A stretch of DNA of 64,000 nucleotides from positions 248,001 through 312,000 of the IMG/VR virus record IMGVR_UViG_3300037297_000066; one strand, 5' to 3'. The position numbers and the translations under genes were made by a program. The notes beneath the pieces were generated by a model. The model was not told where the DNA came from, made no database searches, and worked only from the letters and a program-made list of their open reading frames with translations. The stretch's first letter is position 1. Every line of letters starts with the position of its first letter. Positions 2,973 through 61,684 of the stretch are shown here, one piece after another.

Positions 2973-4132
2973 GCCCTCTTCGACTTCAGTCCACGTTTCC
3001 TGGGATTGACGGCCTTCCGTACCTCTTCCTTGACCAGCTCTTCTACCAAGGTTTTGAGGGAGGCTGTGAACTCTTCGATGAGGGGACGGGCAGCTCTTTT
3101 GACCCGGGTCTCGAACTTCATGCGGCCGAGTCTACCAACTGGGCTCCGAACTTTTCCACCACAATCTGGACCCCAAGTCGAAACTTGAGCAGGGCCTCTT
3201 GTTCAGAGTCAGTGGCGTCTTTGATGGGGATGGTACTCTCTCCTTCTACCACGGATGTCAGAGCCTGGATTCGGCCTTTCTCAACGGCCTGGAGACTCAC
3301 CCGGATCTTTCGGGGGCTTCCGTTGATTCCGCTTTCTAGAACCAGACGGTGTCCGGCTAGTACTCTTTCGAACGCTTTTTGTACGGCTTGTTGATGCATT
3401 GATCCTGTCCCAACATGTGGGGAACTTTAGGGGCTCCCCGAGAGGCTCGAAGACCTCCAGAAATTTGAACAACGGCCAGTTGACCTTGGTTCTCTGTATG
3501 ATTCCTCGGTCGGTCTGGACCGTCCCCCATCCGTTTTCGTGATGAAGATTCACTTGGAGGACCTCTACCTCGTAGCCGGTCTTTCGGTGTCTCCAGCGAC
3601 GGTAGGGGACCTTCAGGAGTTCAGACTCAAGCTTGTAGTTGGTCCTGAACTCTTCCCAGGTTTCCAAGTAGACTTCCTGGGTTCGCAGGTTGCAGAGGGA
3701 GACCTCTCGCTGCCTTTCCTGAAGGAGCTTCACAAGGTCTCCAGGGACTACGTCCATTTCCCGTAGCCCCTTTCTCGTGCACCTCCAGAGTCGCTTACTT
3801 GGGTCCACCCGTCGCCTCTCGGTAAAGGGCCACGCACTTAGGGCAGACGTTTGTATCCAGCTGTCGTTCGGAAATTTGGACCTCCAGATCCCAGCCTCCC
3901 CACCCCTGCTTTCCTTGGGCGTTGACTTGGTTCGTGGGGACCACGTGTCCACACAAGCTGGGAGTGTCGATTCCTCCCCCGTACTTGGACCCTGCTTCGG
4001 TGAGAGGACGGATGTGCCACAGAGAGGTGGATGAAGCCAAAGAGGACTCACAGAAGCGGTAGCGAGGCATAGGGGGGAGCTCCTTGTAAGGAGGCCGGTG
4101 GAAGAGTTGGAGAAGGGTCTCGCCGACCCAGA

Positions 4133-9556: not shown

Positions 9557-9634
9557 GCTCTCGGACCCCGTGGAAGGGGCGACGGATTCTAACCCCGTGT
9601 CAGAGTGAGGGTTCAACTCCCTCCGAGAGCGCCA
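9557..9634 (+). tRNA. tRNA-Sup(CUA), amber anticodon
   Basis: GCTCTCG/CGAGAGC acceptor, loop TT-CTA-AC, GAGGG-TTCAACT-CCCTC, ends GCCA. Confidence 0.75.
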
Positions 9635-9635
9635 T

Positions 9636-9714
9636 GGGGACGTAGCTCAGTGGTTGAGAGCGGCGAGCTCTAAACTCGTGTCTGTCGGGGGTTCGAGTCC
9701 CTCCGTCCTCACCA
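9636..9714 (+). tRNA. tRNA-Sup(CUA), amber anticodon
   Basis: GGGGACG/CGTCCTC, D-arm GCTC-AGTGGTTGA-GAGC, GCGAG-CT-CTA-AA-CTCGT, ends ACCA. Confidence 0.85.
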
Positions 9715-31740: not shown

Positions 31741-31814
31741 GGGTCTAAGGCTGAGGTAGCCGGCTGGTTTCCAAGTCCAGTGACGATGGGGTTCGATTCC
31801 TCATAGACCCGCCA
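31741..31814 (+). tRNA. tRNA-Trp(CCA)
   Basis: loop TT-CCA-AG, G73, CCA. Confidence 0.7.
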
Positions 31815-41665: not shown

Positions 41666-41953
41666 ATGGCAGTGACGACCTGCTTCTACATCGAGCCTCC
41701 GTTGAGACAGCGCATCCTGACCTACGTGGAGTACCACAGGTGGAGCAGCGCTTCTCAAGTGGCGAAGGCTCTGAAGGAAAAGACTAGCTCCGTCGCTTCG
41801 ATTCTGAAGAAGATGGCGGATCAGGGAACTCTGGTCCGAAAGGATGGGTATGGGCCCCGAGGTGGCTACGGTTACAGTCTTCCGGGACCCAGCTCTCAAC
41901 CTCTCACCTGTTGGGAGAGGGTCCTGGAGGATTGGGTACCGTTTGGAGAGTGA
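41666..41953 (+). CDS. winged-HTH protein (C-terminal TCWERVL)
   Basis: SASQVAKALKEKTSSVASILKKMADQGTLVR. Confidence 0.7.
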   Translation: MAVTTCFYIEPPLRQRILTYVEYHRWSSASQVAKALKEKTSSVASILKKMADQGTLVRKDGYGPRGGYGYSLPGPSSQPLTCWERVLEDWVPFGE

Positions 41954-42029
41954 ACCAGATAGGTTCTGGGCCTGCCTGGAAAGCAGAGTGCAGTCGCAAG
42001 GCTGTGGGGATCGAGACCTCCGCTCTCCG
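41945..42029 (+). tRNA. tRNA-Ser(GGA), atypical T-loop ATCGAGA
   Basis: CT-GGA-AA, long variable arm, G73. Confidence 0.8.
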
Positions 42030-42114
42030 CTAGGTTGGAGGATTGAGTCTTTCGTAAGTCTGGCTTTGGGGAGGGCCTTCGGACCCTCTTTCATGTCTGG
42101 TCCCCCAACCGTTT

Positions 42115-42392
42115 GTCCCGGTAGCTCAAACGGAAAGAGCGCAGGAAAAACGGAGCCTGTTCCAAAATCTGCTTCAGGGTGGAGGAGTAGCTGAACCTGC
42201 TTTGGTGAGGAGTCGGTGGGCGATGTTTGCCGAAACACCAGCCAGGGTGGGGTGTTCTCAAGGTTGCGGATGCACCGGGCCATGCCCTACTGGTAACAGC
42301 TAGGGGTGGGCGGGAGTCGCCATGGCAGGGAAGCGCGTTATCCTACACGAGAACTTTGCTGTTACATGTGGGTTCGAGTCCCATCCGGGACA
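42115..42392 (+). ncRNA. tRNA body with ~200-nt structured insertion in the anticodon arm
   Basis: GTCCCGG/CCGGGAC-A acceptor; canonical D-arm at 5' end and T-arm GTGGG-TTCGAGT-CCCAT at 3' end. Confidence 0.6.
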
Positions 42393-42396
42393 CTAT

Positions 42397-42482
42397 GGAA
42401 GGTGAAGGTCCAGTGGTGGGCCGCCGGCTTTGAACACCGGAGATGCGAGAGCATTGGAGTTCGACTCTCCCGCCTTCCTCCA
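42397..42482 (+). tRNA. tRNA-Ser(TGA)
   Basis: loop TT-TGA-AC, long variable arm, TCCA. Confidence 0.7.
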
Positions 42483-42575
42483 ACATGTTGATGGGTACCC
42501 GATCCCGAAAGCTGTTCACGGCCGTCAGGGTTGGGGTGGAGCGAGGACCTTGTACTCGTACTCAATTCAAGGCAA

Positions 42576-42660
42576 GGAAGACGAACCGAGTGGGACTCGG
42601 ACCTGTTTCGAAAGCAGAGTGCGGTGGCAACGCCGTGGGGATCGAGACCTCCGTCTTCCG
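42576..42660 (+). tRNA. tRNA-Ser(CGA), atypical T-loop ATCGAGA
   Basis: TT-CGA-AA, long variable arm. Confidence 0.8.
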
Positions 42661-42665
42661 CTATT

Positions 42666-42753
42666 GGAGGGTAAACCAGGTGGGACCTGGAGCTGACTGC
42701 TAATCAGTCTGCGGTGGCAACGCCGTGGGGATCGAGACCTCTGCCCTCCGCCA
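42666..42753 (+). tRNA. tRNA-Ser(GCT), atypical T-loop ATCGAGA
   Basis: CT-GCT-AA, GCCA. Confidence 0.82.
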
Positions 42754-42777
42754 CAACTTCTGGTGTATAGTGCTATC

Positions 42778-43359
42778 ATGAAGTTCGCTGACCTTCCTCG
42801 ACTGGCCCTGGGACACACCATTCAGCTGGCTGGAGCCATCTGGAGCGGTGAGGGCAAGAACTACCTTTGCTTCCTTCCGGATGAGGAGGAAGCTCTCCCC
42901 CTGGAGATCGTGACGCTCACCCAGGAGGAGTGGGAGGAGTTCCTGCTGCAGACGGACCTGCTCAACGTCGAGGCTCAGGTCCTGGACGAGGCTGGCAAGG
43001 TGGTCAAGGCCATCGTCCGGAAGAGCCAGCGGCAGATCTCTCAGAACGTCTCCTGGGAGGTGTTCCGTCGGGACGCCTACCACTGCCGTTACTGTGGCCG
43101 GGGGGACGTTCCCTTGACGGTGGACCACCTGGTTTTGTGGGAAGAGGGAGGCCCCTCGGTTCCAGCCAACTTGGTGAGTTCCTGCAAGAAGTGCAACAAG
43201 ACCCGGGGAAACACTCCTTACGCTGAGTGGTTGAACCACCCGTACTACAAGCGAGTTTCCCAAGACCTTTCCAGAGCCACAATCGCTCAGAACTTGGCTT
43301 TGGTTCCGACTCTGGCTACCATTCCCAGGCAGCCGCACAAGCCCGGGAAAAGGAGGTAG
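42778..43359 (+). CDS. HNH endonuclease domain protein
   Basis: VFRRDAYHCRYCG..LTVDHLV..GG..NLVSSCKKCNKTRG. Confidence 0.9.
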   Translation: MKFADLPRLALGHTIQLAGAIWSGEGKNYLCFLPDEEEALPLEIVTLTQEEWEEFLLQTDLLNVEAQVLDEAGKVVKAIVRKSQRQISQNVSWEVFRRDAYHCRYCGRGDVPLTVDHLVLWEEGGPSVPANLVSSCKKCNKTRGNTPYAEWLNHPYYKRVSQDLSRATIAQNLALVPTLATIPRQPHKPGKRR

Positions 43360-44153: not shown

Positions 44154-44311
44154 AGTAGGACAAAGGAAAGTCCTCTGAAAGCAGCCGTGAACCGTATCGC
44201 CTAACAACCGCAAATGCGTAAAAAACCGTGAGCTGGGGGAAGGGCCCAGACAGGGGCGGTACGTAGTAGGGGCTCCGAGTAGGAGGGTGAGTAGGTTGTC
44301 TGATGCCGACT

Positions 44312-44398
44312 ATTAGCGTAGCTCAAACGGGAGAGCATCCGGATCGCAGTTGCGGTTTTTCAAACCGGAGGTTGTGGGTTCGATTCCCGCCGTGAACG
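44312..44398 (+). pseudogene. tRNA-like element with hairpin inserted in the anticodon loop
   Basis: canonical D and T arms, TCCGG/CCGGA stem, 22-nt loop, weak acceptor. Confidence 0.4.
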
Positions 44399-44845
44399 TC
44401 GGATTTTTCTGAGGTAGCGAAGGGCTACTCTCTGGCTTAAAGAAGAGGTCTTCAAGAGGACTTCATTGAGGTTGCTTTGGATGGCTGCCTTGTGGCTACG
44501 TAGCAGGTTCGATACTTCTTGTTCTAGTTTGGTGAAGCTGTTGCTTAGGGAAGTCTTCTGAAGGGTCACTTTGAGCTTGGAAGCCACGGTTTCGATTTGG
44601 GCTTTGATGTCCTCGTGGGATTTCTGCTCCGCTCTCTCGTAGTCACTCTTTCCTTCTTCAAGGGGGTCCACTCCTGGGGTGCCTTTGATTGTCAGTTTCA
44701 GCATTCGGATGGTTTTGTTGGTGACATCATAGGCGGCTTGAAGGACATCTTTTTTGCGGGGGGTCTTGATCAGTATCCAGTTGGGGGTGTGGAACCCAGG
44801 AGAGGAGATCTTCACTGATCCGTCTCTTAACCATCTAGTGCCCAT
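44360..44845 (-). CDS. hypothetical protein with C-terminal RVALRY motif
   Basis: 161-aa ORF. Confidence 0.6.
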   Translation of the reverse strand: MGTRWLRDGSVKISSPGFHTPNWILIKTPRKKDVLQAAYDVTNKTIRMLKLTIKGTPGVDPLEEGKSDYERAEQKSHEDIKAQIETVASKLKVTLQKTSLSNSFTKLEQEVSNLLRSHKAAIQSNLNEVLLKTSSLSQRVALRYLRKIRRSRRESNPQPPV

Positions 44846-54877: not shown

Positions 54878-55260
54878 GGGGCCGATTTGGTTTCGACAGA
54901 GGCATGGAGGTTGTAGTTGCGAGCAGAGGCGCTCGGCCCTTTCCAAAACCGAGCCGTAAATAGCTGCAAACGATAATGCAATCGCTGATCAGGCCATCGC
55001 AGCCTGAAAGCCGTCCGACCTTGAGATAGCCTTGGTAAAGGAAGGACGTCAGCACTAAGGCCACTGGACCACAAGGATTGCCTAACCACTTGTGATCGAC
55101 ATTGCAGAATGGCTTTGACGGGCGAGATTCCCGGAACCTCAGAAAGGCAGCCAGCGGCCTCCTGAGTTTTGAACATCCCCTTGGGGACTAGTTGGCTACG
55201 CTCGTGAATGAGGCTACAAGCAAAGGTTTCTGGAACCGGGTTCGAGTCCCGGCGGCTCCA
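54878..55260 (+). ncRNA. ssrA: tmRNA; tag peptide ANDNAIADQAIAA
   Basis: GGGGCCG..TTTCGAC 5' end, G3:U70 acceptor CGGCTCC-A, T-arm CCGGG-TTCGAGT-CCCGG; tag ORF 54966-55007. Confidence 0.92.
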
Positions 55261-55351
55261 CTAAGCAATTTCAAGTCCTGTCAAGGTGTCTGAGCGTCTC
55301 TGATGCTCACTTGTAGGAGTGCTATGAAAAAGCTGAAACGATAGGTGTACC

Positions 55352-56604: not shown

Positions 56605-58032
56605 ATGGAGATCCAAGCACGTTTCGCACACACCAAGCTCAACAACTCTCAAGACAACGAGACCTTCCTCGTACTCACGCTCACGGCCCCCAAGATTGAC
56701 TGGCTGGAGAAGAGGCCGGACATTTCCGTGCTTCCGGTCATTGACGTCTCTGGATCCATGACCGGTCCCAAGCTGGAATATGCCCAGAAGTCGGCCCTCA
56801 AGTTGGTGGAGCATCTTAAGCCCGGGGATGTTTCTGGGCTAGTAGTGTTCTCCAACGGTGTGAATGTTCTAGTCCCCCCCGGGCCAGTCACGGCTGAACA
56901 GAAGGATCGACTTCGGAACGCTATTTCCAAGCTGAAGGCTTCTGGAGGCACCAACTTTGCCGAGGCCATGAGTCGATCTTTGGAGTTGGTCCAGAATCTG
57001 GACCTGCCTCCTAAGTACAACCCTCGGGTCATCATGTTCACTGATGGGGAGCCCACGGTTGGAATCACGGACAACAACGCCATCCTCAGGATACTGGCAG
57101 AGAGCCGGGCCCAGGTGACGGTGAGTGCCTTCGGGTATGGGGCCGGCGGAGTATGGGGTGGTTGTGACCAGGACTTCCTGACGGCGTTTGCCAAGCAAGG
57201 AGCTGGGAACTACGCTTATATCAAGGAGCCTGACGCCGCTCTGAGTGCTTTTGGGAAGGAACTAGGGGGGCTCCTCTCGACCTACGCCACAGACCTTTCG
57301 GTAGATGTGGAGCCCTTGGCTGGGCATCGGGTTGTGGAGGTGGTTTCCGACGTGGATGCACACGAGACTGATGTGACTGGTTTGCTAGAGGTCACGCTGC
57401 CGGACATTTTGGCTGAGGAGGCCCGGCACATCGTTCTCAAGGTTCAGACCAAGGCTGGGAAGGCCGGGCCCCGTGCAGTCAATCTGTTCGATGTCGAAGC
57501 TTCTTACCTGGTCATCACAGAGGAAGGGAAGAAAGTAGAGCAGAAGGTTTCTACCAAGGCCAAGCTTCGGTTCCATTCCGGGGACAACGAGAAGAACCCT
57601 GACAAGGTACTGTCCGAGGTTATTGGGTTGGCCCAGTTGGTTCAGGCCCAACTCAAGGCTGAGGAGAAAGCCAACGACGGGGATTACACGGGAGCGGCCG
57701 GGGTGATGCAGAATGCTCACCAACTGGAGTACATCAGCGAGAACTCCGGGCTTTCGGCCTTGGCAGGCAACATCCAGGACAGGGTTGCCTCTTCCCAAAT
57801 GTATGCTTCAAGTGCAGGTTACCGTCGGAGCACTCACATGGCGGGAACTCGGGCCTATGGAGTGGTTGGGATGGATGCCGGGGCTTCGGCTGATCTGGCG
57901 GGGTCTACCTGCTTCATGAGCTTCGACAATGAGGCGAGGGGAGCTCTGGCGGATTCCTTTCAGGCGGACTCGGGGGTAAAGGTGGAGGGTCTGGGGACCA
58001 TCCACAAGACGTCCAGCGGTAAGCGTTGGTGA
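56605..58032 (+). CDS. vWA domain protein (YfbK-like)
   Basis: VIDVSGSM, GGTNF, MFTDGEP and GAGNYAYI motifs. Confidence 0.9.
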   Translation: MEIQARFAHTKLNNSQDNETFLVLTLTAPKIDWLEKRPDISVLPVIDVSGSMTGPKLEYAQKSALKLVEHLKPGDVSGLVVFSNGVNVLVPPGPVTAEQKDRLRNAISKLKASGGTNFAEAMSRSLELVQNLDLPPKYNPRVIMFTDGEPTVGITDNNAILRILAESRAQVTVSAFGYGAGGVWGGCDQDFLTAFAKQGAGNYAYIKEPDAALSAFGKELGGLLSTYATDLSVDVEPLAGHRVVEVVSDVDAHETDVTGLLEVTLPDILAEEARHIVLKVQTKAGKAGPRAVNLFDVEASYLVITEEGKKVEQKVSTKAKLRFHSGDNEKNPDKVLSEVIGLAQLVQAQLKAEEKANDGDYTGAAGVMQNAHQLEYISENSGLSALAGNIQDRVASSQMYASSAGYRRSTHMAGTRAYGVVGMDAGASADLAGSTCFMSFDNEARGALADSFQADSGVKVEGLGTIHKTSSGKRW

Positions 58033-58239: not shown

Positions 58240-59646
58240 TTGTCCCTAAAGTACGCAGCCCAGAAGGTGAGTGACGGCCACTACGTGTTGCCCAAAGTGG
58301 CAACCATGAAGGTCGAAGTTCACGCCTTTCTTTCGGAAGCCCTCTATGAGGCTTCTGAGGAGCAGGTGTGGGATCAGGCTCGGAATGCCGCTTCCTATGA
58401 GGGAGTGGTGGGGGCCTATCTGATGCCGGATACCCACACTGGGTTTGGGGTACCCATCGGGGGTGTGGTGGTGACAGAAGACACCCTCATTCAAGCCGGA
58501 TCGGGATATGACATCTCGTGTGGGGTGCTCTACATGAAGGTATCGGGGCTTTCTGCCAAGGGTACTCGTGGTAGGTACAACCGAGAGCGTTGGATCACCG
58601 AGGTGGAGAAACGTGTGGCGTTGGGAGTGGGATCCAAGCGCCCCAAGCTGATGCCCCAGTTCTCCCCAGCGTTGTTGGAGAGTATCTTCCGATATGGGGC
58701 CAAACCTCTTGGGACGAAGCCTGATGTATGCGAAAGGCAGTACATTCCGGTTCCCGAAGGCACAGACTTCACCAAGATCGAGAAAGCCTATGAGAAAGCC
58801 CTGCCCCAGCTCGGATCTCTAGGGGGCGGCAACCATTTCATTGAGATGCAAGTGGACGAGGCCACCGGGGATGTTTGGGTCATGATCCATTGCGGGTCCC
58901 GGGGTTATGGTTGGCAGACAGCCAACCACTACTTCTACGAGGGAGCCCAGCTTCGAGGTCTCAGGAAGAACCAACGGGAATCTTCTTGGCTGAGAATCGA
59001 CGAGCCCTTGGGTAGGGAATATTGGGCCTACCACAATTCGGCAGCCAACTATGCCATCGCCAATCGCCACACCATCGTTTCCGGCGTCCAGGAGGCCCTA
59101 GGAGAGGTTTTTGGGGCTGAGGCGGAGGTCTACTACGAAATCAGTCACAACCTCGTACAAGAGGAAACTCTGGTCCTTCCCGACGGAACTACAAAGCGAG
59201 GGTTCGTGCATCGGAAAGGGGCCACCCGAGCCTTTCCGGCCGGGCATCCTGATTTGGTAGGTACCAAGTGGGAGCCGACGGGGCACCCGTGTTTGATTCC
59301 GGGGTCGATGTTCTCAGGGGCTGCCATTCTCTTTGCCGAACCTCAGGCCCATCAGTCGGCTTGTTCGGTCAACCATGGGTCTGGCCGGGTGCTCGCTCGG
59401 GGGCAGGCCAAAAGGAAGCTTCATCACAAGCAGCAACGAATCGACGACCAGATGCGGACGGTCAAACGTCGGTTGGGGGGCGTCGAAGTAGAGGGCATCG
59501 TAGGCAATAGCAAGCACACGCCTTTGGACGAATGTGGAGAGGTCTACAAGGATCTGGACGAGGTGCTTGTCGTTTTGCAGCAGACAGGTATTGCAAGAGT
59601 CGCTCATCGTCTTTACCCTGTGGCGAACCTCAAGGGAACGGACTGA
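58240..59646 (+). CDS. rtcB: RNA ligase RtcB
   Basis: MPDTHTGFGVPIGG, GYDISCG, LGSLGGGNHF, IHCGSRG, HNLV, HRKGATRA, PGSM and HGSGR motifs. Confidence 0.96.
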   Translation: MSLKYAAQKVSDGHYVLPKVATMKVEVHAFLSEALYEASEEQVWDQARNAASYEGVVGAYLMPDTHTGFGVPIGGVVVTEDTLIQAGSGYDISCGVLYMKVSGLSAKGTRGRYNRERWITEVEKRVALGVGSKRPKLMPQFSPALLESIFRYGAKPLGTKPDVCERQYIPVPEGTDFTKIEKAYEKALPQLGSLGGGNHFIEMQVDEATGDVWVMIHCGSRGYGWQTANHYFYEGAQLRGLRKNQRESSWLRIDEPLGREYWAYHNSAANYAIANRHTIVSGVQEALGEVFGAEAEVYYEISHNLVQEETLVLPDGTTKRGFVHRKGATRAFPAGHPDLVGTKWEPTGHPCLIPGSMFSGAAILFAEPQAHQSACSVNHGSGRVLARGQAKRKLHHKQQRIDDQMRTVKRRLGGVEVEGIVGNSKHTPLDECGEVYKDLDEVLVVLQQTGIARVAHRLYPVANLKGTD

Positions 59647-59658
59647 CTCGACTCAGGC

Positions 59659-61684
<2,026 letters not shown>

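Follow-up and report, generated by a model that had tools for sequence, protein, structure and literature searches.

Genomic Context of the Element

The window, i.e., the whole 64,000-nt stretch of DNA that was analyzed, corresponds to positions 248001-312000 of an IMG/VR virus record that is 437,331 bp long and ends in direct terminal repeats; the source of the record is a huge phage. More than 50 tRNA genes and one tmRNA gene were found in the window, and the element described here, at positions 42115-42392, is flanked by serine tRNA genes on both sides (Table 1). Three quarters of these flanking tRNA-Ser genes were detected only at a relaxed ARAGORN threshold. Long variable arms and the odd T loop AUCGAGA instead of UUCGA are features of the genes with the anticodons GGA, CGA and GCU, none of which was called by default ARAGORN or by the Rfam tRNA model. 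The tRNA set of the phage covers all 20 amino acids without the element; the gene that completes it, a tRNA-Trp(CCA) at 31741-31814, was likewise called only when the ARAGORN threshold was lowered. Two adjoining tRNA genes with the amber-reading anticodon CUA are located at 9557-9634 and 9636-9714, yet the standard code gives long ORFs in abundance. A malformed tRNA-like gene with a poor acceptor stem was found at 44311-44400, where an outer pairing (CCGAC/GUCGG) followed by a U run resembles a terminator.

Downstream of the tRNA arrays, genes for the tmRNA, a VWA-domain protein, RtcB and Cpn60 follow in a row. The HNH gene that had been noticed downstream of the element was found to be real; it starts 386 nt past the element, from which it is separated by three tRNA-Ser genes. 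No HNH relatives were detected in IMG/VR by a peptide-pattern search, and none were present near the homologues of the element. The gene seems to encode a free-standing homing endonuclease of the tRNA cluster and not to be part of the element; such a gene has a precedent in SegB of phage T4 (PMC2330249).

Table 1. Positions of the element, its parts and the neighboring genes in the window
Feature	Position	Strand	Remark
tRNA-Ser(GGA)	41945-42030		upstream neighbor of the element
Acceptor 5' strand, GUCCCGG	42115-42121	+	perfect pairing with 42385-42391
D arm, GCUC / AAACGGAAA / GAGC	42124-42140	+	G18 G19 in loop
Hairpin h1, stem (G)CAGG/CCUG(U), loop AAAAACGGAG	42141-42160	+	stem covaries
Middle domain, 93 nt	42161-42253	+	lineage-specific
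P7 5' strand, GUUCUC	42254-42259	+	pairs with 42349-42354
J7/8, AAGGUU, then GCG (5' strand of 3-bp helix)	42260-42268	+	GGUU and GCG nearly invariant
Internal-loop strand, GAUGCACCGG	42269-42278	+	opposite AGGGAAG
Three-way junction P8a/P8b/P8c	42279-42326	+	
P8a, GCCAUG/CAUGGC	42279-42284 / 42321-42326		10 variants, all paired
P8b hairpin, GUAA tetraloop	42285-42305		homologue tops often GNRA or A-rich loop
P8c hairpin	42306-42320		
Internal-loop strand, AGGGAAG, then CGC (3' strand of 3-bp helix)	42327-42336	+	invariant columns in alignments A3 and A4
J8/7, GUUAUCCUACAC	42337-42348	+	family consensus UU..CC...; CC invariant, flanks vary
P7 3' strand, GAGAAC	42349-42354	+	partner of 42254-42259
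Tail, UUUGCUGUUACAU	42355-42367	+	last base U 42367 acts as N48
T arm, GUGGG UUCGAGU CCCAU	42368-42384	+	paired in 18 of 18 compact members
Acceptor 3' strand, CCGGGAC, and discriminator A73	42385-42392	+	
tRNA-Ser(UGA)	42397-42482		downstream neighbor of the element
tRNA-Ser(CGA)	42576-42661		same serine tRNA run
tRNA-Ser(GCU)	42666-42753		same serine tRNA run
HNH endonuclease gene	42778-43356		Pfam HNH, E 5.9e-11
Phage tmRNA	54878-55263		tag ANDNAIADQAIAA
VWA-domain protein	56605-58029		
RtcB RNA ligase	58240-59643		Pfam E 1.6e-87
Cpn60 chaperonin	59963-61681		

Homologues and Their Distribution

More than 30 homologues of the same layout, 184-278 nt long, were obtained; their sources are phage contigs of IMG/VR and of metagenomes, cultured Streptomyces phages and, sporadically, actinomycete genomes; the compact members of the family are 181-192 nt long. 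A neighboring protein of 643 amino acid residues led to five related phage contigs. One of them, L006, contains a 226-nt relative of the element, as well as a separate canonical group I intron in a tRNA-Lys(UUU) gene. With the pattern of the shared 5' motif, an IMG/VR contig (L018) and four metagenome contigs (L045, L069, L091 and L102) were recovered, and a core pattern consisting of GATGCACCGG, a gap and AGGGAAGCGCG yielded 12 more phage contigs. When the core pattern was used on bacterial genomes, about 15 true members were found, all in actinomycetes. By BLAST, unannotated copies of the family were detected in 17 phage records, which correspond to 16 distinct cultured Streptomyces phages (two of the records are of Gilson); in Gilson (NC_048742), the unannotated element, at 81042-81217, directly follows a tRNA-Leu gene.

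The RNA family is phage-borne and sporadic in bacteria. The phage copies were always located in or beside tRNA arrays, on contigs of up to ∼450 kb. Nothing was conserved in the gene neighborhood of the actinomycete copies, and no protein gene was found to co-occur with the element. Among the other actinomycete genomes sampled, the element was absent from all 150 of the carrier's class and from all 100 of the carrier's family. A single copy was present in each of the five carriers checked. One Streptomyces sp. contig (L153) contains two copies 3.3 kb apart, at 169-355 and 3499-3662 (131 and 116 bits). No description of the family was found in the literature; possibly it is one of the candidates left without a name in PMC10690425.

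The tRNA-Like Top Half and Hairpin h1

In its top half, the element has all that a tRNA has there: the acceptor stem, the D and T arms and the tertiary pair 15:48. The perfect 7-bp acceptor (GTCCCGG/CCGGGAC) followed by A73 at 42392, the D arm with GG in its loop and the canonical T arm of the original prediction are all present, and the distance from the end of the D arm to the start of the T arm is 227 nt. CCA is not encoded at the 3' end. Among 26 homologues, 20 variants of the acceptor were observed, all of them paired except for one mismatch in the homologue L158; the acceptor pairing, which had been set beforehand as the refutation test, is thus kept through many compensatory changes. 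In each of the 18 compact members, the D stem is either unchanged or still paired. The Levitt pair 15:48, between D-loop base 15 and the last base of the tail, is A:U in 13, G:C in 12 and A:A in 1 of the 26 members, 23 of which have A as the discriminator.

An anticodon arm, with a 5-bp stem and a 7-nt loop containing U33, was not found in the family members. The original prediction had placed the insert in the anticodon loop; instead, the anticodon-arm position is held by hairpin h1, because h1 directly follows N26, and the large module is found at the position of a class II variable arm. The h1 stem consists of 4-5 bp and occurs in 17 variants, such as CCGG/CCGG, CCGU/ACGG, GCGC/GCGU, ACCG/CGGU and CUCCU/AGGAG. 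Its loop of 8-11 nt (AAAA(A)CG..) always has an AAAAC-like start, lacks U33 and has a conserved sequence in members with differing acceptor stems. Given the conserved sequence, the variable length and the lack of U33, the h1 loop is not an anticodon loop, and in the compact members (181-192 nt) there is no other room for an anticodon arm.

The Middle Domain, the P7-P8 Module and the Tail

The plan of the compact members starts with the acceptor, the D arm and N26, which are followed by h1 and a linker of 4-7 nt. The module then consists of the 5' strand of P7, a joining strand ending in GGUU, GCG, GAUGCACCGG(GA) and the P8a/P8b/P8c junction, in which the P8b hairpin is variable, and the 3' part runs through (C)AGGGAAG, CGC, UU..CC..., the 3' strand of P7 and the tail to the T arm and the 3' strand of the acceptor. 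The window copy differs from this plan twice: it has the 93-nt middle domain for the linker, and its tail is 13 nt long.

The region corresponding to the middle domain measures 4-7 nt in the compact members, 40 nt in L045 and 80 nt in L069, and in a marine-sediment relative 67 other letters stand in place of 80 nt of this domain. The pairing of a hairpin at 42213-42233 is kept in L069 via changed pairs, as read from the sequences, and AACCU at 42194-42198 can pair with AGGUU at 42261-42265. The stem TTCAG/CTGAA, which had also been listed, lies in this lineage-specific region and is absent from L069, the nearest relative.

The best-supported helix of the insert is the long-range pairing GTTCTC/GAGAAC that had been proposed to its 3' side (P7), of which 19 variants were observed among 26 homologues. 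In L069, P7 reads GACUUC/GAAGUC, which amounts to three compensatory pairs relative to the window copy. The proposed stems GCCATG/CATGGC and CCCT/AGGG (the latter inside 42285-42305) were recovered as parts of the three-way junction, the P8c loop of which is AACCUUAA in the compact members. The internal-loop strand GAUGCACCGG is identical in 25 of 26 parsed members and shows no change in any of the 18 compact members, a conservation that in part reflects how the members were found, since the search pattern included this strand. Variation of the strand was observed in L102, L006a and L091. For AAGGUU, three candidate partners were found, and in only four members is a distant hexamer of the AACC type complementary to it at every position (6/6).

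The tail is 6-35 nt long in the homologues and 6-13 nt long in the compact members. In the window copy, GCUGUUAC of the tail has a possible partner in GUAACAGC (42293-42300), a segment of P8b, the hairpin capped by GUAA. The 8-bp pairing that had been put forward (GTAACAGC/GCTGTTAC) is present, and 7 of its 8 pairs are kept in L069, but its partner moves in other long-tailed members: in L045 (CAGACAGC/GCUGUCUG), L102, L126 and L130, the long tails pair with other internal segments. No such tail pairing was observed in short-tailed members. These pairings suggest that long tails tend to be paired, with a shifting partner, and the 8-bp pairing was treated as a putative lineage-specific extra helix or alternative conformer. 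Two further pairings, a closing stem GCNGG/UUNGC and a P3 formed by GGAGCC of the h1 loop with GGUUGC, were rejected as family features; each fits some members only and may represent an alternative conformer.

Statistical Support for the Structure

A covariance model was built from 17 compact members only, all of which it recovers. With this model, a single copy was detected in the 437-kb phage, at 42228-42360 of the window (63.6 bits, E 7e-16). In the 26 distinct parsed members, nearly all cells of the acceptor, h1, P7 and P8a were paired. In the model-fitted alignment, which leans towards the structure of the model, 94.2% of the cells were paired, as compared with 77.4% in shuffles, and both-sided changes were observed in 18 of 29 pairs; the covariation score was 0.419 versus 0.119 for shuffled alignments, and none of 500 shuffles reached 0.419. 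In slid controls, 35-50% of the cells were paired. The same pattern was obtained for the acceptor, h1, P8 and the T arm from an independent MAFFT alignment (A3). The minimum-free-energy fold of the element was only mildly better than those of shuffles (z = -1.9).

In the Rfam search, no family matched 42115-42392 at E <= 10, and no match was obtained for any member of the family. The element was not called by default ARAGORN or by the Rfam tRNA model. This rejection by the default tRNA finders, together with the second malformed tRNA-like gene 2 kb downstream, would also be expected of a decaying, functionless tRNA pseudogene that was hit by an insertion. Against such an origin, however, stands a covarying layout that is maintained in phages differing widely in GC content and in host, with near-identical module cores, and we regard it as highly improbable.

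Evaluation of a Split tRNA Gene

The original prediction had also offered an atypical intron, to be removed by RtcB or by self-splicing. The element would then be a tRNA gene split either by a reduced group I-like ribozyme or by an insert that is cleaved out, with the exons rejoined by the RtcB of the phage. Several observations are consistent with this idea. The helix order of the element (a distant AACCU, P7 5', AGGUU, P8, a joining strand and P7 3') recalls P3/P7/P8 of group I introns, and the joining strand presumably resembles J8/7 of known introns. RtcB is encoded by the phage itself, and a true group I intron is present in a tRNA-Lys gene of the related huge phage L006. This canonical intron (RF00028) interrupts the anticodon loop of tRNA-Lys(UUU) at L006:7232-7554, with the splice sites CUUU|U...G|UAA.

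The exons, however, do not yield a tRNA. Contiguous deletions gave no 5-bp stem with a 7-nt U33 loop in the members tried, and neither manual trials, which covered every plausible junction, nor the intron mode of ARAGORN produced an anticodon arm in the window copy, L069, L045, L018, L091 or L131. L006a was the sole member tried that allowed a 5-bp stem, and then with A33. The 'tRNA-Asn(GUU), 189-nt intron' reported by ARAGORN in intron mode depends on C33, on a stem that contains a mismatch and on a variable region of 21 nt. Hidden anticodons (the Trp-like UUCCAAA in the middle domain, an AUCCUAA-type sequence in J8/7 and Asn(GUU)) and a two-intron model were considered as well and dropped, with none of them conserved. 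An intron-less twin of the tRNA was not found by exact-pattern scans, the phage tRNA set is complete without the element, and among the DNA contigs of four metagenomes no insert-less allele was detected, only a variant middle domain. Among public RNA runs, none was found to contain the locus.

Features of a group I intron are likewise missing. The h1 pairs are C-G, A-U/C-G, G-C and G-C/U-A, and never U·G, and in the window copy no U occurs between the D arm and element position 44. A conserved terminal G was not found either; tails such as CGUUGC, UCAAGGU and UACGUUGGU have no conserved G position in common. In 18 compact members, only 4-7 nt lie between h1 and P7, in the place of P4-P6. No match to Intron_gpI was obtained for the window element at E <= 10, or for L045, L069, L091, L102 and L006:1250-1475 at E <= 1, whereas the tRNA-Lys intron at L006:7256-7496, used as a positive control, scored 56.5 bits against a gathering score of 50. 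A manual P3-P9 group I model of the window copy was dropped because the compact members have no P4-P6, the family shows no common splice-site rule and Rfam was silent.

No cleavage motif was found, no 3-4-3 bulge-helix-bulge was seen by eye at the borders of h1 and P7, and no small self-cleaving ribozyme (hammerhead, HDV-like, twister, twister-sister, pistol, hatchet or hairpin) was matched by Rfam at E <= 10 in 41850-42800. With no anticodon arm, U·G pair, omega-G or Intron_gpI match, the intron proposal is not supported, and a split tRNA gene of either kind is considered improbable. Since the P7/P8 order and AAGGUU/AACCU(U) resemble the P3-P8/P7 core of group I introns, the element may nevertheless have a catalytic origin or activity, a suggestion that is drawn from this likeness.

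Comparison with Known RNAs

The element was compared with known RNAs that combine tRNA features with additional domains. Like the group I tRNA introns (RF00028; L006:7256-7496), it has a tRNA frame and a structured insert of ∼150-250 nt and occurs in a phage tRNA array; unlike them, its insert is not located in the anticodon loop, its exons form no anticodon arm, and most members of its family are without P4-P6. With tmRNA (RF00023), it shares an acceptor/T domain on a large body, which is pseudoknotted in tmRNA and may be so in the element, the lack of an anticodon and its occurrence in large phages. The element differs from tmRNA, however, in its full D arm, its size (184-278 nt versus ∼360 nt) and the absence of a G3·U70 rule. 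The tmRNA model gave no match on the element, and no shared peptide of a tag reading frame was found after h1 in the window copy, L069 and L045, as read by eye.

T4 species I and II are small stable RNAs that are co-transcribed and processed with a tRNA cluster and have no known function. They belong to a phage tRNA gene cluster (PMC2330249), and the element, which would be co-transcribed and processed in a similar way, is likened to them by description, homology being unlikely. YrlA (RF02553), an ncRNA of actinobacteria and their phages among others, mimics the D arm, the T arm and the acceptor of a tRNA and has a covarying 15:48 pair. Both of its ends belong to a stem that binds Ro60, a closed hairpin forms its 'acceptor', and a Ro60 gene lies within 4 kb (Chen et al., 2014, PMC4201824), whereas the ends of the element form the acceptor stem. 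No TROVE domain was detected in the whole 437-kb phage at E <= 1, and no YrlA match overlapped the element; weak sub-threshold matches were found on neighboring tRNAs only. A relation to Ro60 and Y RNA, which had been prompted by the VWA proteins and the RtcB of the window, was rejected, with no TROVE domain and no support from PHROGs.

In class II tRNAs and allo-tRNAs, as in the element, an extra helix is present between the anticodon and T arms, below a canonical top half, and long-variable-arm allo-tRNAs have been described (Mukai et al., 2016/2017, Nucleic Acids Res 45:2776, PMC5389517). The element differs from both in its module of 100-200 nt, its class I-type D arm and its conserved 'anticodon' loop of 8-11 nt. 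A leucine identity, considered on the basis of A73 and the long arm, was weakened by a report that Streptomyces LeuRS does not read A73 (PMC6614811). Candidate resemblances to RNase P CR-I, hairpin-ribozyme loop B, the 23S GTPase center, 5S loop E and the T-box distal loop were rejected, with Rfam silent and a differing strand order.

Proposed Nature and Role of the Element

On this evidence, 42115-42392 probably encodes one stable tRNA-shaped ncRNA, a tRNA mimic of a conserved phage-borne family, rather than a split tRNA. The suggestion of a new tRNA-framed ncRNA in the original prediction agrees with the homologues, in which the acceptor pairing, the 15:48 pair and the non-tRNA module are all kept. 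The element would be transcribed together with the neighboring tRNA-Ser genes. By analogy with established tRNA biology, RNase P and the 3' tRNA-processing enzymes would then excise the RNA, and CCA would be added to it as to a tRNA; from these steps we infer its size, ends, CCA addition and stability. The tRNA top half would dock the RNA on a tRNA-handling partner, and the invariant module could serve as an effector surface that binds or blocks this partner. Having no anticodon, the RNA would take no part in decoding and would offer no loop for an anticodon nuclease to cut. Our leading guess is that, in the infected cell, the RNA disturbs a host factor to which tRNA bodies bind, or gives protection from it.

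Against the mimic reading, a plain decoy is not obviously in need of a 100-nt invariant module. The main rival reading is that the tRNA frame is a mere scaffold for processing and stability, and that the module, as a ligand-binding aptamer, a protein sponge or a ribozyme, has the whole function, in which case no partner would be approached by tRNA mimicry. Engineered tRNA scaffolds lend processing signals and stability in this manner. The most invariant bases of the element are indeed in the module (GAUGCACCGG, AGGGAAG and GCG/CGC), the acceptor sequences vary freely and share no identity set, and compact autonomous folds typically have GNRA and A-rich loops and, as may be the case here, a pseudoknot. 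The selection on the tRNA part, however, exceeds what helices alone would need: covariation of 15:48 extends to 25 of 26 members, the T loop is maintained along with G18 G19, and A73 is present in 23 of 26. Moreover, the module was never found outside a tRNA frame among the matches inspected. A mere scaffold thus appears unlikely, and a tRNA mimic is preferred.

A further, tentative possibility, which we consider less likely than not, is that the P7-P8 module represents a new functional fold, i.e., a ribozyme or a ligand- or protein-sensing domain, which is carried on a genuine tRNA body and acts on host translation or tRNA surveillance. If so, it would constitute a new class of tRNA-borne effector RNA delivered by phages. 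With about 25 bases invariant among phages whose hosts are distant, the fold probably has a conserved cellular machine as its target.

The arrays of tRNA genes in phages are commonly seen as kits for codon supply or anti-defense, and a tRNA mimic, strongly conserved and unannotated, would be added to them by the present family. Since laboratory culture is possible for the Streptomyces phages that contain the element, its role is directly testable. In the annotation of such arrays, caution is advised with the intron mode of ARAGORN, by which genes of this kind can be labeled 'intron-containing tRNA'.
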